Program-made: the position numbers and the translations under genes
The notes under the pieces: model-generated
Database searches by the model: none
What the model was told of the DNA's origin: nothing
Seen by the model: only the letters and a program-made list of their open reading frames with translations
Shown: positions 2,202 to 63,992 of the stretch, one piece after another
How positions within the stretch are numbered: the first letter of the stretch is position 1
How the letters are laid out: each line of letters starts with the position of its first letter
DNA from: Schizochytrium sp. TIO01
Lineage: Eukaryota > Protista > Bigyra: Labyrinthulomycetes
Assembly (NCBI GenBank): GCA_004764695.1
Contig: SMSO01000025.1
Location: forward strand, 2,170,001-2,234,000
DNA: 64,000 nucleotides
Direction: 5' to 3'

Positions 2202-4510
2202 CTAAGCATCTGAACTTTCAGAGCTTTCTGAATCAACGTCTTCCAATGACAGAAGTCCTAGTTCCTCACTTGGATCTGACAGTTTCTTAAGAGATGTAGA
2301 AGCGTCCGGGGTTATACCGTAGAGCTCATTATCAATTCGCTCCTTGTCTAGCTGATGCCTACGGAGAAGCTCAACAGAGTCAGTGCATAGACTACGCGTA
2401 ACAATGTGGCGCACGTTTTTAGGCAATTTACGAGCTTTTTCACGCCAATGAACCTCTTCCAAAGGAATCTGTGCCCTTCGCTTATGGTTATGCTTCGGGC
2501 CATATGCATGCAAAATCATATCACAGTCTGCACAATATTCTGCGTTGCATGAGACACAGCGAATTGTGGCTTCATTCTTACAAGATGGATCTTCGCACCA
2601 GCCTTCGCTATTAAGCAGGTATGGTTCAGCCCAAAGAGTGTCTTGTGTTGCCGGGCAATGAAAGTAAAACTGCTTGCTCTCTTGATCCAATATTTTCTGC
2701 CATTGCCAATCGCGCACAAGTTTATCGTCTACCTCACGAAGGAGCAGAAATTTTTTATATAAATAACCAACTTTCTCTACATGTGCATCGTTGCGATCTT
2801 TGATAATCTCTGCGATTAAGGTGTTCTGGTCGCAAGCCTTACGAGCAATATATTCGTTTCTCGCTCTCTCTTCACCAGCTTGTCGTGCTTTCTTTGTAAT
2901 CATACCCAATCGATTAGTGCTGTTCTCGTCGCGGAGAGCATGCTCACCACCAACAATTCGAAGGTGATCTCGACCTTCCGGTGTTCTGAAAAAGGCTCTC
3001 GCTTCTTCTTCCACTAAAGCAATCGCTTGTACATATAGTTGCTTCTCGGCTTCATCAATACATTCTTTGCCGACTTTTTCAAGTTTATTGACAGCATTTT
3101 GAAAATCTTGTTTTGCTTTAGCCGCGGCTTGGGCGAGAACCTCATTCTCGGCAAGTTGCTCTTCCTCTTGAGACGCGAAGATTTCCATACTTTTCTGTTC
3201 ATAGGCTTCTACTGCTCTTAGATAAGCAACCTGACATCGTTTAACCAATTTGAGGGTATTTGATGCGTCTTCCCGCGTTGCAGTGCGTTTAATTGTTTCG
3301 TTGAATTCATAGATGTTTCCCTCTGAATCTGCTTCACTTTCCTCCAGAATTGCCGGGTTCAGGCCACTGATGAGCTTCTTCTGTGTATTGAGGCTAGAAC
3401 TATCTTCAACAGAGCGCGATAGTAGACCGCTACCAAGACTTGATGACTTGATGCCACCCACAATAGATCCATCCAATGGAGATACACTTGGAACGAAATC
3501 CGGGACAACACGACCTCCTGCAAGAGCACTGTTGCTAGAAACTTGAGAAAGTCGCATGGTTTTCTGTTTTTCCACTATATCCCGGCGTTTTCGTAAGAGG
3601 ATATTATCCGTGGGTTCAAGCTCACCAAACGTTTCAGTACGTAGCTTCGTTCGAGCTTCCCAGAAGTTTAATCCCAACAAGCGATTGCGTAAGTTCGCTT
3701 GCACTTGAACAACTGGGCGTAGTAAAGACTCATGTTTTTCTGCGAATACTGTAAAATCCTGTAGGTTCATTTCCTCAGTAATTTCAGAGACTATTGCTTG
3801 CATACTAGCAGGTGTCTCAGGTGAATTGTGGACCATACGTACGAGCGCGTCGCATTGGTATTTGTTGATTGTCATTTTGTGGTCAACATCAAAAATATCC
3901 ATCGAATACTTGCACAATCTTGTAAAGTTAAGAGTACAAAAGTTCCAAACACCGACAACAAATTCTTCAAAACTAAGATTCTCGCTTCCGTCAAGGTCAA
4001 ATTCACCAAACAGTCGATCAACAAATTTTGATCTTGTGATGCCATAGAAGTTGTAGAATTCTTCGAGTCCAATCCCGCCCGAGCCACTAAGGTATAATAA
4101 TATCCAGAAGTTAGTTAAAGTTCCAGACCAGGGCCTCACTTCTTCTATACATTTGAACTTACTCTTGATCCAAGTCAACAAAGGTTTGGAATAGTCGGAG
4201 ACCAATGTTTCCATTCGAATCATCCTTCTTTGACAAACTTATTACTATTCATTCCATTAATTTAAACTGTTAGGTTCATTTTCTACATACTATGCATGCG
4301 TCTACAACTTACGTTGAATGCTCTCAAGAGTTTCCATAAGACCATTTTCAACTTTGAGCGTGTAGAACTCTTTCAGAGTCATGCTCTGGGATCAAAGTCG
4401 TGAGTTAGCCTTGTAAGTTGATGTCTACATATCAATACAGTTTGGCTTTGTGTATCGAGTGGGTTCCAGATTCTAACGCAATATTATCATGGCACTAAAC
4501 TTACCCCCAT
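2202..4510 (-). CDS. Calcineurin-B-like EF-hand protein with coiled coil, WW domain and B-box zinc finger (4 exons)
   Basis: Proposed exons 4510-4505, 4385-4313, 4244-4163, 4086-2202, with GTAAG donors and CAG/TAG acceptors, all in phase. Splicing 4162-4087 restores the EF loop 'DLDQDGSGGIGLEEF'; a second loop is 'DLDGSENLSFEEF'. WW: 'WQKILDQESKQFYFHCPATQDTLWAEP'. B-box: 'CEDPSCKNEATIRCVSCNAEYCADCDMILH..HNH'. The start codon (4510 versus the ATG in exon 2) is uncertain. Confidence 0.8.
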
Positions 4511-57796: not shown

Positions 57797-60097
57797 CTAA
57801 GAAGATGAAGTAGATGAAGTATCACTTAAGGCGAAGACGAGCATAGCGCCGCAATCGCCACGCTGGCCAATGGTGACTCCGTCTCCAGAACCATCGCTTG
57901 AGGTGTATCCCGAGTAACAAGAGCAAATCCCTGTTGAACGATCGCATGTACCCTGTCCAGAGCATTCTATGAATTCTGTTGTTCCTTGAACTGTCTCGGA
58001 AATTGTAATGGTGCCAGTTAGTTGCGTAACATCAAACTGCATTAATGGTAAGTCTCCGGGGACCAAATAGCTTAACGTTACAGTTGTACCAGAACCGGAA
58101 GAGCAAACTTGAGTAGTAGAGCCACCCGAGAAGGTCACTTCAACTTCATTGATTGAATACAAAGCTTCTAAATAAGCTGTAAAAGTGTCCTTATTTGTGT
58201 TGTACATGATGTCGGGTGTTGTGTCTTCACGGAAAGTTGCTTGAAAAGAACCTGCACTAGCAATACAAACAAACGTCTGCACTTCGTTTACCTGACCAGT
58301 AGTTTGGGGATTGTCTCCATATGGGCAAGTGAGAAGTGTACAGTCATAAGATGCAGCAAATGAGGAGTAGTCCCAGCCAAAGGGGCCGTGAAAATATGCC
58401 GAGTCGCAATAGCAACCTTGGATAGATGCGTAATCCCAAGTATCATCATCAGGAATTGCGCCATAAGTCACGCCGCGAAGTACTCCATTATCCTCTGAAA
58501 GTACTGCAAGCTGCTGCATATTATAGCATGTCCCATGCCCATTGCATGTATTTCCATTCTCGGCTCCTGGGCATGCAAGCAACTGGCAAGCACTGCCCGT
58601 AAACCCTGATTTACAGCTACATAGCCCAGTTTCACGATCACAAATGCCCATATTTGAGCACTCTGCGCTTGTATGCACCGTGTTAGACGTGGAGGGTTCT
58701 GCAAACCACCTTAACCCAGTTGGGCAGGTCAAAAGAGCACAGTTATGACCTGTGTAACCAGTGTTGCAAGTGCATTTAAATGTTGTCCCATCACATGTTC
58801 CATGGTTTGAGCACGTAGTAACACTACCTGAACCATCGTCGCCGTACGGGCATCCAGTGGGAATAACAGAGTAATAACCACAATCATCACGTGTACCTGC
58901 TCCGCCTTCTCCATCTGAAGCTTCGAAAAGACCTCCCGTAGAGGCCACAGCTGTTTTTTGGCACCAACAGTCTCCGAATTGTTGGTTGCAGTATCCTCGA
59001 CCTGAGCATTCTGTTAATGCGGCGTCACCATCATATGATGTTCCTCCTTGGCTTCCTGTTGATCCTCCTGAAACAATGCTTAAGCTTGTGCTCCCTCCAT
59101 CACTAGTCAAGTAAGAAGTTCCAAGCAAGACTAAGTCTGGCAAATCACCTGGATCGTTACGAAACGTGATTTCTGCACTCACGCCATCATCATCACAAAC
59201 TGTCGAGCCTCCATACAAAACAACGTCTACTCCTCTGATTGAGCTCAAACTTTCGAGTTTGGTCTCTAATTCGCTTGCGCTATCTGAGTGAAGAATTTTG
59301 ACACTTTTGGACCTAAAACTTAAAAAAAAGTATCCTGAGCATGTGGTTGGACATGTGCACTCTAGGATTTGGACTTCCTTTTGATATGAACTTGTCATAT
59401 AGTCTGTGCCCTTTGTACAAGATCGTAATGAACAATCATAACCTGTGAAGCCTTCATCGCAGATGCACCCATAAATTTTATCTGCATCCCAGCGCGTATA
59501 TGTCGTCGAATAGAAAAGAGTAGCGTCGTCCTGAGTTTCTGCTGCCTCGCGGATTGACATGCACCTTCCACGGCCATTGCAAACCTTACCATTTATTTTA
59601 GGGCATGATAATCTCTCGCACGCCGGACCTTCAAAACCTGACATGCAATCACATGTCCCTCTTGTATAATCGCAGACCCCCATGTTACTGCATTCCACTT
59701 CAGTGTGTGCTACATCATCTGCTGTGGCAAAATTTGACCACGCTACTCCTTTTGGGCATTCTCGATACGAGCAATCTGGCCCTGCGGAGTTCTGATACCC
59801 TTTTGAGCAGCTGCAGTAAGCCCCTTCTATTGAAGAAAGTACACATTGGCCATGGCCTGAGCAGCCATTAGAGCAAGGTCCACCTGCTTGGACAAACAAG
59901 CGCTTTGGGTTCCCCAGTTCTGAGGCCATTAACGTCCCAAGAACAAGCACTGCTATGCGACGCAGGGAGGTACATCCTCTCGACTGCTTGCAACGCCTTC
60001 GTCTACGCGAGTTTATCGATATAGTTTCCAGCTCAGGCGTAGAACCCCTGTCTAAACAGGAATAAAATAGCTTCTCTGAAGTGTTAACGTCTTTCAT
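57797..60097 (-). CDS. Stramenopile tubular mastigoneme (flagellar hair) protein, Sig1/Ocm1-like, with multiple EGF-like repeats
   Basis: First ATG is 60097, followed by a hydrophobic signal-like stretch. Repeated 'CSGHGQC', 'ECSNMGVCD..G.C.C..GF.G.AC', 'WDADKIYGCICD..GYDCSLRSC', 'EVQ..C' modules and 'RDDCG/RGDCG' ends; two similar halves. Confidence 0.75.
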   Translation of the reverse strand: MKDVNTSEKLFYSCLDRGSTPELETISINSRRRRRCKQSRGCTSLRRIAVLVLGTLMASELGNPKRLFVQAGGPCSNGCSGHGQCVLSSIEGAYCSCSKGYQNSAGPDCSYRECPKGVAWSNFATADDVAHTEVECSNMGVCDYTRGTCDCMSGFEGPACERLSCPKINGKVCNGRGRCMSIREAAETQDDATLFYSTTYTRWDADKIYGCICDEGFTGYDCSLRSCTKGTDYMTSSYQKEVQILECTCPTTCSGYFFLSFRSKSVKILHSDSASELETKLESLSSIRGVDVVLYGGSTVCDDDGVSAEITFRNDPGDLPDLVLLGTSYLTSDGGSTSLSIVSGGSTGSQGGTSYDGDAALTECSGRGYCNQQFGDCWCQKTAVASTGGLFEASDGEGGAGTRDDCGYYSVIPTGCPYGDDGSGSVTTCSNHGTCDGTTFKCTCNTGYTGHNCALLTCPTGLRWFAEPSTSNTVHTSAECSNMGICDRETGLCSCKSGFTGSACQLLACPGAENGNTCNGHGTCYNMQQLAVLSEDNGVLRGVTYGAIPDDDTWDYASIQGCYCDSAYFHGPFGWDYSSFAASYDCTLLTCPYGDNPQTTGQVNEVQTFVCIASAGSFQATFREDTTPDIMYNTNKDTFTAYLEALYSINEVEVTFSGGSTTQVCSSGSGTTVTLSYLVPGDLPLMQFDVTQLTGTITISETVQGTTEFIECSGQGTCDRSTGICSCYSGYTSSDGSGDGVTIGQRGDCGAMLVFALSDTSSTSSS

Positions 60098-60833
60098 CTC
60101 GGCAGCAAACAAAGTTTCCGAACTGGCACCGGTTCAGGTCACCAATCGCCCTCAGGCCTTAGGCGAGCTTGGTGTACGTGGCCTTCCTCTGGCAAGCTTT
60201 GTTGGGTCAATTATCTACTCAAATACGAATGACAGCATGGGCTCCTTTAAGTTGTACGCTAGTTGGTCTTCATGTTCACAAAGAGGCCTAAAGAGGCTTA
60301 ACGGGTCTCGCAAAGTGGTCTATCATAAACTCCCACTTTTCTTTTTTGTCTCATTTTCTCCATCTTCGATTCTTGTTACTTAAGGAAAGGAAAAAAGATA
60401 AGAAATAGTCTTTACAAGAGCATTAAAAGATGGTTGTGTATTTCGGCAAAATATACCCGATCAATATTTTGGCGTAATTTCAAACGAGTGGCTTGTGACA
60501 AGGTCAAAGAATGCACATTTTTCTGATGGCATTATGTGATATTTTATGAAAAAGGTGAAGGAGAGGAGCTCTTTCTGCACAAGACATACATCTCATCTTA
60601 GAAGCTATACAAACTTTCTAATTCCGGAATGAGAGAAGTTTGGTGTCGCCTGGGTTTTGCCATGATACGACGTTGAAAAGGACTAACTAAAACAAAAAAC
60701 ACAGTTTATTTATGATAAGAATCTCGATCGATGTAGACGTAATTGTCAACGATCTAATTGGGACTGGGCTGAGAACTCACATACAACAAGGATTAAACGC
60801 GGGTACAATACGATATTACGTCATCACAACAGC

Positions 60834-63800
60834 TTAATAGTATCCTTCAAGCTCTTCAAGTTGTTTTGGGCTCATGTACTTCTTTGCCTCAGTGAGCTCG
60901 CGGTCAAGCCACCAAAAGCGACCCTGACCTGTTGCACTTGCAAGTTCCTCCTTAATTTTGTCCAGAAACGCAGCTGCCTTGGCAAAGACCTGAACAGATT
61001 TGGCCACAGCTGCTTCTGCTTCGGCCCGAGGTTTTTCTGCATGTTCAGCAGCTTCCTCGGCATCCGCTTGGGCTTTCTCAGCATCTTCACGAGCATGCTG
61101 GACTTCTTCACGAGCCTCTTGGGCAGCCGCGGCCAGGTCTGTAGCAGTTTGTCTAGCTTTCTCGGCAGCTTCACGTTGATTAGAAGCCTCCGTGAGAGCT
61201 TCCTCAGCTTCAGCTCTTGCTGACTCCTGTACAGAAAGTTGGTCCTGAGCAAGTGCACGCGCCTCTTGTGCAGCCTCACGTTGTTCACGAGCATGCTCTA
61301 GGGCTTCTGTAGATGCCACTAACGCATCTTCGGCTTGTTGTCTGGGCTCAATAGCATCATTTCGTACTTGCTCTGCGTGGGTGGCCGCCTCCTCAGCTCG
61401 TTGTTGTTGTTCCATGGCTTTGACACGATGTTCTTCTGCCTCATTCGCACGAGCAGTGGCCGCATCTCGCTGCTCTTGGGCGACGCGAGCTTGGTCCTGG
61501 GCCGTTGCGCGTTTTGCCTCAGCTTCTGCTCGCTTGTCTTCTGCTTTCTTACGTTCCTCCTCCGCAATTTGACGAGCTGCCACTGCTTCCTGGCGTTCAT
61601 CGGTGGCTTCTCCCTTAGCAACATCTGCGTCAATCATGGCCTGATGGGCCGCATCTGTTGCAGCCACAGCCCTTTCCCGAGTTGCTTCTGCCTCAGTTCG
61701 CATCGCCTCTGCAGCTTCGCGCGTTGCAGCTGCAGCAATTCGAGAATTCTCAGCAGTTTGGCGAGACGCTTCTGCTAAGCTCGCTGCTTTATCCGAAGCC
61801 TCTCTGGATGCCGTAGCGGCTTTTTTGCTCTGCTGCGATAGTGTTCGTGACTCCACAGCTAGCTTGCGCTCTATTGCTGCCTTCTTGCGAGCCTCAACTG
61901 CTGCAGCTCGTTGTTGCACGGCTTGTTCATGAGCTTCTTCGCTGCGAGTTACAGCGTCATTAGCGGCCTTACGCTGCTCTTCAGCGGCTTGTCGCTTCTC
62001 ATCTGCAGCGGTGGCTGCGTCAGAAGCTTTCTCGCGCTCAGCCTCTGCGATTTGACGTGCCTTCTCAAAAGGGGCACGTGCCTTTTGGGCTTGAAGGCGT
62101 GCCAAGCGAGCTTCTTCTGTAAGTGGTGCTTGTTTACGGAGAAGTGCTTCATTTGTAAGTTTTGCCTGTTGAAGAGGGAGCGGATCTTCTTGTGCCTCGA
62201 GCTGTGCCAGCATATTAAGAGCCCTATTGCGCGCAACAATGCCTGTCGATGGGTTCTCGGCAGTCTCGCGAAGAATTTCTTTGCGTTCAATCATCTCTTT
62301 CTTGGTGTTCTCCACTGCCTCAATGGCTGCTTTAATCTGCTCTTCAAGATCTTCCATAGCTTGTTCTGCAGCCACGGCTTTCCCTTCTGCCTCTGCAAAT
62401 ACGGATTCCTTAGCAGCTGCAGCATCCTCTTTTGCCACCGCACCAGCCTCGACCTTGCGAGCTGCCGCAAGAGCATCATTTGCAGCCTTCTCGAGCTTTA
62501 CAGCAGCGACCTCCTGACGCTTGGTCTCCTTTTTGGCCTCTGCCGCGTCTGCTTCTGCCTGATACGCTGCTGCCTCCTGATCTACAGCGCGAGCTTCTTC
62601 TTCAAGTGCTCTCTGTTCTGCAGCAAGTGCCTGTTCTTCGTTCTGACGAGCTGTTTCTTCACGTTCTGCAGCCTTCTCTGCAACAGCAGTAGCCTTTTCT
62701 TCGACCTCACGAGCTGCGTTTTCGCGCTTCAAGGCCTCAGCCTCTGCAGCTTTAGCTTTCTTCTCGACGCTGCGAGCTTTGACTTCAGCATCAATTGCGT
62801 CCTTTTCCGCAGCTTTAGATTCCTTTTCTTTCTGAACAGTGTTCAAACGAGCTTCTTCAGCACGTGCCTCGGCATCTTCGGCCTCGCTTTCATTTTTCTT
62901 GGCGTGGTCTTCAGCGACGACTGCTTCAGCTTCGCCTAATTTTGCAATCTTTTCTGCATCAACGGCCTCGCGTTCTCGGTCAAGAGCCTTTGCTTCTTCA
63001 TCCTCTGCCTCGCGCTGTGCATCTTTGGCAACAGACTCTGCTTCTGTCGCCATGTTGGCAGCAGCTGTCGCCTGTTGAGCAGCATCTTGGCTTGCTTCCA
63101 TTGCAGCAACAGCCTGGGCCTCGTAATCCTTCGCAGAGGCTTCTGCTGCTTCTGCATCAGCCTTAGCACTCTCGCTATCCTGTTCAGCTTGAATAGCTTC
63201 TTCTTCACGAGCTACTGCTTTTGCTTCGAGGTCTTTAGCAGATACTTCCTCCTCTTTAGCATGAGCCTCTGCATCACGTGCTTCTTGTTCTCTTGCGAGG
63301 GCCTCTTGCTCCTCGCTCTCAGCCTGATTTTTGCCGTCTTCGGCCTCTTCTTCGGCCTTTTCTGCAGCAGCTTCTGCCTCTTTGATTTGTTCTACTGCTT
63401 CCGCGGCTCGGTCTGCAGCTTCTTTGGCAGCGTCTTCTTCCTGTTTGAGAGTTTCGGCTTTAGCACTGCAATCGTCGAGGGCCTCTTTTGCCTTGTTGAC
63501 GTTGCTCTGAGCCTGCTCAAGTAGCTTGGAGTCTGAGTCATCTCCCTGAGGAGCATTTGCAAGCTCAAGCCAATCCACCTCGAATGCATGAATGAGCAAT
63601 TCGACGAGAGACACGTGTTTGTTGAAGTCTAAATCGACCTGCTTCATGACCTTGCGCATTTCGCGAACAGTCATAGTTTTACCTACACGCTCAAAGAAGA
63701 TGTGTGCTTGCTGCTCATCAAGCTCGTGGCCCTGATCCTTCAAGGGGTCGATTTCAATACAGACGTGGTAGTACTGCCACACAGTCTCGCATTTGCTTTC

Positions 63801-63992
63801 ATCCTCAGAGAACATCAAGCCCTTATTCCAGAATGCATTTAAGAAGCTAATCGCCTGATCTTTGTATTGTTTTGCGCCTAGCTCAGAGAGTCTTGGTAAA
63901 GCCTCGACCTCTTCTGGGGTACGGCGTCCAGATCGTGTGCTTTTACGCAGACTTCCGCGCAGACTTCCGCGCAGACTTAAGCGCTTCAACAT
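60834..63992 (-). CDS. Calcium-regulated actin-bundling protein family (Dictyostelium ABP34-like) with greatly extended alanine-rich coiled coil (1052 aa)
   Basis: N-domain 'YKDQAISFLNAFW..ELDEQQAHIFFERVGKTMTVREMRKVMKQVDLDFNKHVSLVELLI..ANAPQG' (EF-hand); central 'GIVARNRALNMLAQLEAQEDPLPLQQAKLTNEA'; C-terminal 'GQGRFWWLDRELTEAKKY'. GCCACCATG start context. Confidence 0.85.
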   Translation of the reverse strand: MLKRLSLRGSLRGSLRKSTRSGRRTPEEVEALPRLSELGAKQYKDQAISFLNAFWNKGLMFSEDESKCETVWQYYHVCIEIDPLKDQGHELDEQQAHIFFERVGKTMTVREMRKVMKQVDLDFNKHVSLVELLIHAFEVDWLELANAPQGDDSDSKLLEQAQSNVNKAKEALDDCSAKAETLKQEEDAAKEAADRAAEAVEQIKEAEAAAEKAEEEAEDGKNQAESEEQEALAREQEARDAEAHAKEEEVSAKDLEAKAVAREEEAIQAEQDSESAKADAEAAEASAKDYEAQAVAAMEASQDAAQQATAAANMATEAESVAKDAQREAEDEEAKALDREREAVDAEKIAKLGEAEAVVAEDHAKKNESEAEDAEARAEEARLNTVQKEKESKAAEKDAIDAEVKARSVEKKAKAAEAEALKRENAAREVEEKATAVAEKAAEREETARQNEEQALAAEQRALEEEARAVDQEAAAYQAEADAAEAKKETKRQEVAAVKLEKAANDALAAARKVEAGAVAKEDAAAAKESVFAEAEGKAVAAEQAMEDLEEQIKAAIEAVENTKKEMIERKEILRETAENPSTGIVARNRALNMLAQLEAQEDPLPLQQAKLTNEALLRKQAPLTEEARLARLQAQKARAPFEKARQIAEAEREKASDAATAADEKRQAAEEQRKAANDAVTRSEEAHEQAVQQRAAAVEARKKAAIERKLAVESRTLSQQSKKAATASREASDKAASLAEASRQTAENSRIAAAATREAAEAMRTEAEATRERAVAATDAAHQAMIDADVAKGEATDERQEAVAARQIAEEERKKAEDKRAEAEAKRATAQDQARVAQEQRDAATARANEAEEHRVKAMEQQQRAEEAATHAEQVRNDAIEPRQQAEDALVASTEALEHAREQREAAQEARALAQDQLSVQESARAEAEEALTEASNQREAAEKARQTATDLAAAAQEAREEVQHAREDAEKAQADAEEAAEHAEKPRAEAEAAVAKSVQVFAKAAAFLDKIKEELASATGQGRFWWLDRELTEAKKYMSPKQLEELEGYY

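Follow-up and report, generated by a model that had tools for sequence, protein, structure and literature searches.

The stretch of DNA analysed here (the window) comprises 64,000 nucleotides of the labyrinthulomycete Schizochytrium sp. TIO01 (assembly GCA_004764695.1, contig SMSO01000025.1, positions 2,170,001 to 2,234,000). Near its end, a single uninterrupted and intron-free open reading frame (ORF) was found on the minus strand (window positions 60834-63992), which encodes 1052 residues followed by a stop; an in-frame stop is present 13 codons upstream of its first ATG. The product is the longest measured member of the ABP34 (Pfam F_actin_bund_C) family. Between an ABP34-type head and a C-terminal tail, it carries two very long heptad-repeat arms which are connected by a conserved tip motif and which most likely fold back on each other into a single rod. 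The features of the gene are the following, in window positions.

60834..63992, minus strand: complete coding sequence, uninterrupted ORF, 1052 residues
63921..63992, minus strand: basic Ser/Arg-rich N-terminal leader, residues 1-24, starting with MLKRLSLRG
63534..63920, minus strand: ABP34-type head, residues 25-153, recognised by phmmer, family profile and look-alike search
63828-63845, minus strand: FLNAFW motif in the head
63600-63635, minus strand: EF-hand-like loop D-x-D-x-N-K-x-x-S-x-x-E, residues 120-131, in the head
63450..63533, minus strand: rod base, ascending strand, residues 154-181, four heptads in the arm-1 frame
62337..63449, minus strand: arm 1, residues 182-552, 53 heptads of the form A-x-x-x-E-x-x
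62112..62336, minus strand: hairpin tip, residues 553-627, four heptads with I/V/M/L at position 1 followed by the tip motif
62130-62243, minus strand: conserved tip motif, corresponding to Pfam F_actin_bund_C
60999..62111, minus strand: arm 2, residues 628-998, 53 heptads of the form A-x-x-x-R-x-x
60837..60998, minus strand: rod base, descending strand, and C-terminal tail, residues 999-1052
60861-60923, minus strand: family motif of the tail, G-x-F-W-W-x-D-R-E-L-x-E-A-K-K-Y

The entire gene stretch was contained within single contigs of four public runs belonging to four studies, with 0 indels and 0 joints. For three of the four runs, the contigs were 3480-3487 nucleotides long and were guessed by program to be RNA; they start near 60700-60708 and end 170-194 nucleotides past the end of the window. 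This length corresponds to the size of an unspliced mRNA for a gene of 1052 residues, which suggests that the gene is transcribed. When variants in arm length were sought in these four runs, which come from related strains, all the sequences had the same length and were 99.5-99.7% identical. A total of 18 differences between strains was counted in the gene, 13 of them synonymous, and the five amino-acid replacements all spared heptad positions 1 and 5. With the same length in four runs and mostly synonymous differences between strains, the 1052-residue gene is real and constrained.

Heptad arms in a facing register

An initial annotation, made from the DNA alone, had described two uninterrupted arms of 53 heptads each. 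Translation confirmed this description: both arms are 371 residues long and run without any frame shift. Position 1 of the heptad is occupied by Ala in 44 of the 53 heptads of arm 1 and in 46 of the 53 heptads of arm 2, the remaining heptads having mostly Ser or Thr at this position in both arms. At position 5, the counts given previously were reproduced, with Glu in 41/53 heptads of arm 1 and Arg in 33/53 heptads of arm 2, the latter accounting for 33 of the 40 Arg residues of that arm. Compared with the composition of the arms, the enrichments at positions 1 and 5 were characterized by frame-corrected binomial p values of 7e-14 to 2e-18. In both arms, about one heptad in two also has Ala at position 4. 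Ala, Glu, Arg and Lys abound in the arms, whereas large hydrophobic residues are nearly absent; arm 1 is 31% Ala and has no Pro. Furthermore, the heptad frame extends beyond the boundaries chosen in the initial annotation, arm 1 then counting 61 heptads between the exit of the head and the tip, and arm 2 counting 59 between the tip and the tail. The Ala stripe on both strands is a packing signature, and the predicted seam would not be a classical hydrophobic core.

A recent tandem array of DNA was considered as the origin of the arms and was rejected by Tandem Repeats Finder, which detected no array within either arm, and by autocorrelation. Protein identity was about 0.30 at whole-heptad lags against 0.13-0.15 at the other lags and did not decay with distance, while identity at third codon positions was near background at whole-heptad lags. 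This periodicity of the protein, observed without a repeat in the DNA, implies that positions 1 and 5 are kept by selection acting on the protein.

The exceptions to the pattern of position 5 had been reported to mirror each other, and this was verified. When heptad i of arm 1 was paired with heptad 53-i of arm 2, 10 of the 12 arm-1 heptads lacking Glu faced a heptad lacking Arg (hypergeometric p=2e-4). This register, in which 31 of the 52 pairs are Glu-Arg pairs, was the best of the 20 offsets compared; among the others, a hint of signal was limited to 52-i, and the neighbouring offsets did not reach significance. The bulky residues of position 1 had also been proposed to face each other: I4/V49 and S14/S39 do so exactly, but F51/F3 is one heptad off. 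Similarly, the proposal that the arms are complementary in charge was valid for position 5 but not for the arms as a whole. Glu-Arg complementarity is confined to that position, and both arms are acidic overall, with a net charge of -54 for arm 1 and -19 for arm 2. In the i<->53-i register, the pairs formed at position 5 by the four heptads beneath the arms are L-L, V-L, L-F and A-V, and the heptad above the arms, on the tip side, pairs I-L. One and the same register thus closes both ends of the rod with hydrophobic pairs.

The co-variation of the exceptions was then followed in a set of 12 family members with arms of at least 140 residues and clean frames, in which the heptads were counted outward from the turn. 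The coincidence of non-Glu and non-Arg heptads stood out at offset 4 from the turn only, which is the i<->53-i register of the window protein. At this offset, 64 coincidences were observed over the 12 proteins for 39.3 expected (z=7.9). The z value was 7.0 for the 11 proteins other than the window protein and 5.5 for the seven proteins from other organisms. Offset 5 was weakly positive (z=2.0 for the 12 proteins and 1.1-1.4 in subsets). This weak signal agrees with what a ladder of antiparallel geometry would give, in which each Glu would be located between two Arg residues of the facing strand, 3 and 4 residues away along the axis.

In addition, the lengths of the two arms were compared across the family. 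The spans were measured in 76 relatives and in the window protein from three landmarks placed by hidden Markov models (HMMs), namely the point where the head ends, the tip motif of 37 residues and the tail. For these 77 complete members, arm-1 and arm-2 spans were related by a slope of 0.997 (r=0.9988). Arm 1 exceeded arm 2 by 32.1±2.6 residues for arm-1 spans ranging from 37 to 435 residues, and the standard deviation of this excess rose to 76 when arm 2 was shuffled among the proteins. The regression on the other 76 members predicted an arm 2 of 401 residues for the window protein, for which 403 residues were observed; its spans (435/403) are twice those of the next longest members (211/178). 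The arm-2 spans were found to be quantised, 60 of the 77 being equal to 2 or 3 modulo 7 (Rayleigh R=0.65, p=5e-15).

Judged from their sequences, two tandem paralogues of the same genome represent a recent case of compensated length change. These paralogues, L003 and L004 (G000:C36:4239463-4245615), are 2.7 kb apart and 94% identical. L003 is longer than L004 by two heptads in each arm. Counted from the turn, the additional heptads are 12-13 of arm 1 and 8-9 of arm 2, which lie opposite one another at offset 4. Each insertion resembles a local duplication of two heptads.

ABP34 family, paralogues and predicted fold

Analysis of the full-length protein of 1052 residues with Pfam gave nothing useful, and its modules were analysed separately. 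With residues 1-181, which contain the head, phmmer retrieved 548 relatives (best E=3e-38). A profile built from 29 short relatives matched the crystal structure of ABP34 (PDB 4x3n) with E=1.5e-26 across the head, the EF-hand, the hairpin and the tail, the head stretches of this match having values of 3.6e-6 and 6.1e-9. A look-alike search based on a language model, performed with the head alone, returned clusters carrying PF18060. The profile PF18060 extends from the end of helix A over the tip to the start of helix B. On the excised tip (residues 555-638), it scored 22.7 bits (E=1.1e-4, profile positions 2-81 of 87) for a cut-off of 27 bits, a value exceeded by the paralogue L004 (34.4 bits) and by the ABP34 orthologue of the genome, L006 (42.6 bits). 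The HMM of the 37-residue turn missed the window protein, which has one extra residue there, and regular-expression anchors matched it. The tail HMM scored 41.9 bits at residues 1025-1043, and the C-terminal region aligned with residues 227-293 of 4x3n. Head, tip and WW tail are the best-conserved parts across the family. The membership of the window protein in the ABP34 family, already put forward in the initial annotation, is well supported by the profile match to 4x3n and by the paralogue fold described below. The exact sequence of the window protein was absent from a collection of 15 billion proteins. Word-index searches in which candidates of 580-1840 residues were scored for head, tail and tip were blank; these searches also missed known longer relatives and are thus uninformative on orthologues.

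The 64-Mb genome contains one ABP34 orthologue of 297 residues and four long-armed paralogues of 460, 492, 580-585 and 584 residues. The orthologue L006 (G000:C24:3437861-3441175; ORF L006:1492-2382, plus strand) matched 4x3n with E=6.5e-82 and is located on the same chromosome piece as the window, 1.2 Mb away. ABP34 proper therefore coexists with the long-armed subfamily in this stramenopile. Family members were also obtained from a chlorarachniophyte, a foraminifer and Mastigamoeba, and on these sequence matches the family appears to be widespread among eukaryotes. Its length range is 236-958 residues, with all intermediate hairpin lengths represented, and the size of roughly 300 residues initially attributed to ABP34-type proteins has to be replaced by this range.

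The structure of the 460-residue paralogue L004 was predicted by AlphaFold2 from an alignment of 36 sequences, with a predicted local distance difference test (pLDDT) value of 91.1 and a predicted template modelling (pTM) score of 0.74. The model consists of two unbroken helices, residues 140-272 and 298-415, which are separated by a short helix at the tip. Foldseek ranked 4x3n first, and superimposition of the two structures by VIA-align gave Z=19.1 and a root-mean-square deviation (rmsd) of 3.9 Å over 223 of 258 residues, from head to tail. The next matches were two-helix antiparallel hairpins (PrgA, RipA, colicins E3/E9, Smc arms, chemoreceptors, YscO and the dynein stalk). On the colicin E9/E3 hairpins, the rmsd was 2.0-3.7 Å over 132-146 residues (2.0 Å over 132 residues for E9). 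L004 is thus confidently modelled as an ABP34 fold, in which the EF-hand head is packed against the base of an antiparallel hairpin that the tail closes. Together with the coincidence of the exceptions at one turn-anchored register in the homologues, this model lends good support to the antiparallel hairpin proposed initially.

As each arm of the window protein is 295 residues longer than the corresponding arm of L004, helices of about 428 and 413 residues are expected, which corresponds to 61-64 nm at 0.1485 nm per residue. The window protein is most likely an intramolecular rod of about 425 residues per strand and about 60-64 nm, and the earlier estimate of about 55 nm was too short for the full rod. 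The estimated rod lengths of the paralogues are about 20, 22 and 30 nm, and about 5 nm at the ABP34-like end of the family.

Some relatives call for separate mention. A close long-armed relative from another labyrinthulomycete, Mucochytrium quahogii (P0003, UniRef A0A7S2RY24), is annotated as "TolA protein", evidently a mis-annotation due to the Ala/Glu/Lys-rich arms, which hides the family. The 829-residue protein P0005 (NCBI CAK8991024.1) contains the head, short arms and the WW tail, apparently without the tip motif, and its long C-terminal part is annotated by the source as phosphatidylinositol 4-phosphate 5-kinase; this may be a real fusion to lipid signalling or an error of the gene model. 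In the two sets P0013, P0017, P0040 and P0027, P0036, P0056, some members have an additional GYF-like N-terminal domain starting with W-x-Y-L-x-x-D, and others an acidic, probably disordered N-terminal extension of about 390 residues before the head.

In the window protein itself, the MLKRLSLRG start of the leader is followed by G-S-L-R repeats, partly encoded by a perfect tandem repeat (12 nucleotides x 2.8, 63946-63978). The L-K-R-L-S-L-R-G opening is also present in L006 (L006:1492-1530), and a similar one in the relative P0006. By its sequence, this common opening may be a site for a basophilic kinase or a targeting motif. The adjacent ORF of 771 residues (57797-60112, minus strand) is rich in Cys and contains many EGF-like C-x-C-x-x-G-[FY]-x-G repeats; its product looks like a secreted or surface protein and is no part of the rod finding.

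The proposed rod and its alternatives

Taken as a whole, the observations are probably best explained by a giant hairpin rod of the ABP34 family, to which a function in actin spacing is tentatively attributed. The degree of confidence differs between the parts of this explanation, and we regard the rod structure itself as very probable. In the proposed structure, the globular base, formed by the EF-hand head and the C-terminal WW tail, would be joined to the tip motif by a two-helix hairpin. The two strands, each of about 60 heptads, would pack within one chain, antiparallel and in register, as a continuous rod. The seam would be Alacoil-like, with Ala every seventh residue on both strands. 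Four residues past the Ala, Glu of the ascending strand and Arg of the descending one would bridge the seam as a ladder of ion pairs. The aliphatic parts of these Glu and Arg side chains would cover the facing Ala, while their charged heads would form the bridge, and the loss of one partner would lead to the loss of the other. Hydrophobic clusters would clamp the rod at the base and at the tip only. The length of the rod would evolve by gain or loss of whole heptads matched in the facing strand, which would keep the base and tip modules properly closed.

Concerning the function, ABP34 possesses an EF-hand domain with a micromolar affinity for Ca2+ and three actin-binding regions, and its bundling activity is inhibited by Ca2+ (PMC10533516). 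Its fragment 124-295, which contains the hairpin and the tail, showed activated F-actin binding and paracrystalline actin arrays (PMC4160558, PMC3203848). By analogy, the base and the tip of the window protein could each bear an F-actin-binding surface, so that one monomer would hold a filament at about 60 nm from a second filament or from another structure; the paralogues would do likewise at roughly 5, 20, 22 and 30 nm. The strongest actin-binding site of ABP34 (residues ~193-254), reportedly described by Lim et al. in 1999, is said to cover the hairpin tip, with the other two sites in the head and in the tail. A text search for this residue range (193-254) found nothing relevant.

On these grounds, actin cross-linking or spacing at about 60 nm is a plausible but tentative proposal, for which the chances appear slightly below even. 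Control by Ca2+ is more doubtful, since the tip would be about 60 nm away from the EF-hand head. At this distance, a direct autoinhibition from head to tip in the manner of ABP34 is unlikely, and a control of the tip by Ca2+ is doubtful. The broadest form of the proposal is likewise rather unlikely: the family would be a kit of monomeric rulers of programmable length (5-64 nm), charged-seam Alacoils lengthened by paired heptads, of which the forms of about 5, 20, 22, 30 and 64 nm would set different spacings and the 64-nm form would build loose actin arrays in the ectoplasmic net. The interpretation given in the initial annotation is thus partly supported. Its structural half is well supported, and its other half, a Ca2+-regulated spacing between actin filaments or to a membrane, possibly in the ectoplasmic net or in the zoospore, is a tentative proposal by analogy.

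Several observations weigh against the rod of the ABP34 family. When the whole window protein was compared with the PDB by phmmer, 4x3n was the sole match, with E=0.15 only and in three colinear pieces; at the level of sequence, the ABP34 membership of the window protein rests on profile transitivity. The EF-hand loop has Lys at position 6, where Gly is usual, and matched Pfam EF-hand_7 with E=0.087, the ligand positions 1, 3, 5, 9 and 12 being kept (D, D, N, S and E). The single-sequence AlphaFold model of the window protein was poor (pLDDT 54.7), with broken helices. A co-variation of the arm lengths in multiples of 7 had been proposed as a test; the 1:1 relation and the sevens of arm 2 give it a positive outcome, but the arm-1 spans show no quantisation modulo 7, which is tentatively attributed to a variable linker between the head and the first helix. 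The homologues used in the co-variation tests are related, and the z values overstate their independence; as far as the sequences tell, the singling out of one offset alone is not explained by shared ancestry. Finally, both arms are net acidic (-54/-19), and a seam of 370 residues made of Ala, Glu and Arg would be an uncommon core, whose stability might be marginal or depend on salt.

Among the alternatives, the one that survives best keeps the same rod and gives it another job, such as tethering or spacing membrane and cytoskeleton or one organelle and another, or forming part of a structural filament, the long-armed subfamily having left the actin function. The head is only about 20-30% identical to that of ABP34, and the tip of the window protein is below the Pfam cut-off. 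Moreover, relatives exist with unrelated modules (the lipid-kinase fusion, the GYF-like N-termini and the long disordered N-termini), and the basic Ser-rich leader could serve in targeting or in regulation. However, the three modules that bear the actin binding of ABP34 are kept and are the most conserved ones, and the differences between strains are mainly synonymous. We consider a non-actin role improbable, though it deserves more weight than the other alternatives.

An open, domain-swapped antiparallel dimer, in which arm 1 would pack with arm 2 of the other chain and both ends of the resulting rod, about 120 nm long, would carry a base, is a somewhat less likely possibility. It would have the same contact map between arm 1 and arm 2, hence the same co-variation of lengths and the same Glu/Arg register, and sequence cannot separate it from the closed monomer. 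Nevertheless, the tip motif was modelled in L004 as a tight helix-loop cap, in a monomer with a pTM score of 0.74, and the founding member of the family, in its crystal structure, superposes as a closed chain. In addition, ABP34 is described as acting through several sites of one polypeptide (PMC10533516).

The arms could also be two independent, unpacked single alpha-helices (SAHs) behaving as springs, or disordered acidic linkers. Their richness in Ala, Glu, Arg and Lys, with nearly no large hydrophobic residues, is in line with this idea, as are the A-E-E-E-x-x-x repeats of seven residues used in designed SAH domains (PMC5347031) and the low confidence of the single-sequence AlphaFold model. 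But helices or linkers of this kind need no partner of equal length, and this leaves the slope of 1.0 (r=0.998) unexplained, together with the facing two-heptad indels and the joint loss of Glu and Arg at a single offset. The net charge of arm 1 (-54) differs from the balanced charges of SAHs, and the strict Ala stripe is a packing signature. This explanation is accordingly very improbable. Least likely of all is a parallel homodimeric coiled coil of the myosin or cortexillin type, with arm 1 on arm 1 and arm 2 on arm 2: it is the commonest form for cytoskeletal heptad repeats of this length, but it would stack like charges at the seam (Glu on Glu, Arg on Arg) and nothing in it would force equal or co-varying arms, whereas the L004 model and the crystal structure of the family are hairpins.

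Known systems and significance

The closest known system is the calcium-regulated actin-bundling protein ABP34 of Dictyostelium discoideum (abpB, 34 kDa; PDB 4x3n; PF18060). The window protein has the same order of modules, namely a head with an EF-hand-like loop, a hairpin with the tip motif, and a tail, and it shares the C-terminal W-W-x-x-R-[DE]-L-x-E-x-K-K motif. However, ABP34 has 295 residues and a hairpin of about 30-40 residues per strand, against about 425 in the window protein, whose tip is too distant for a direct contact with the head. Furthermore, the regular Ala-x3-Glu and Ala-x3-Arg heptads are missing from the short family members.

The packing of the seam resembles that of the Alacoil, reportedly defined by Gernert et al. 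in 1995 as a pair of antiparallel helices with Ala at every seventh residue on both. The helix axes of an Alacoil are about 7.5-8.5 Å apart. As in the receptor-binding hairpins of colicins E3/E9, Ala or another small residue recurs on both antiparallel helices at intervals of seven, and a secondary contact position lies between these residues. Ala at position 1 is found family-wide in the arm-2 frame. The window protein thus combines the Ala stripe with an antiparallel pairing that is predicted from the co-variation of length and register and from the paralogue model. The known Alacoils differ by their extent, from a few turns to about 10-16 nm compared with about 60 nm, and have no homology with the window protein. 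In addition, the secondary contact of the latter would be a Glu/Arg pair instead of a hydrophobic residue.

The arms of SMC, Rad50 and MukB and the dynein stalk are also made of one chain folded back on itself, forming a rod of 15-50 nm with modules at its base and tip and with strands matched in length. These proteins belong to unrelated families, have hydrophobic cores with frequent discontinuities or elbows, and are parts of ATPase or motor machines that do not cross-link actin. In alpha-actinin, spectrin, filamin and cortexillin, a rod of set length separates the actin sites, and the spacing varies with the length. This likeness is an analogy only: these cross-linkers are made of spectrin or immunoglobulin (Ig) repeats or of parallel coiled coils, and they are dimers with CH-domain actin sites. 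In the window protein, by comparison, a single chain would carry both ends, and its length would change by heptad steps of 1 nm. SAH domains share with the arms the high content in Ala, Glu, Arg and Lys, the periodicity of seven residues and the use as spacers; they are stable as isolated helices through balanced i/i+4 Glu-Lys/Arg pairs and require no partner strand, which is at odds with the unbalanced charge of arm 1 and with the co-variation of the two arms.

ABP34, Alacoils and intramolecular antiparallel arms (SMC, Rad50, dynein stalk) are already known. In a limited search of open-access text, no paper was found to deal with long-armed relatives of ABP34, with length co-variation among the family members or with an Ala/Glu-Arg seam as long as this one. 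For the field of coiled coils, the window protein would be among the longest antiparallel two-helix rods known without a stutter, and its Ala and Glu-Arg seam would be a simple model from nature on which rigid spacers could be designed to a chosen length.

With respect to evolution, the family would provide a clear case, at the level of a protein, of compensatory length change, in which facing heptads are gained or lost together. If true, such a paired insertion of heptads would be comparable to an RNA stem gaining base pairs. The paired pattern of lengths was seen from the recent tandem paralogues to members from Amoebozoa, Rhizaria and stramenopiles. In terms of cell biology, the little-studied ABP34 family appears widespread, highly variable in length and mostly unnamed or mis-named in the databases, and its long-armed members would be testable candidates for what sets the spacing of actin in labyrinthulomycete cells.

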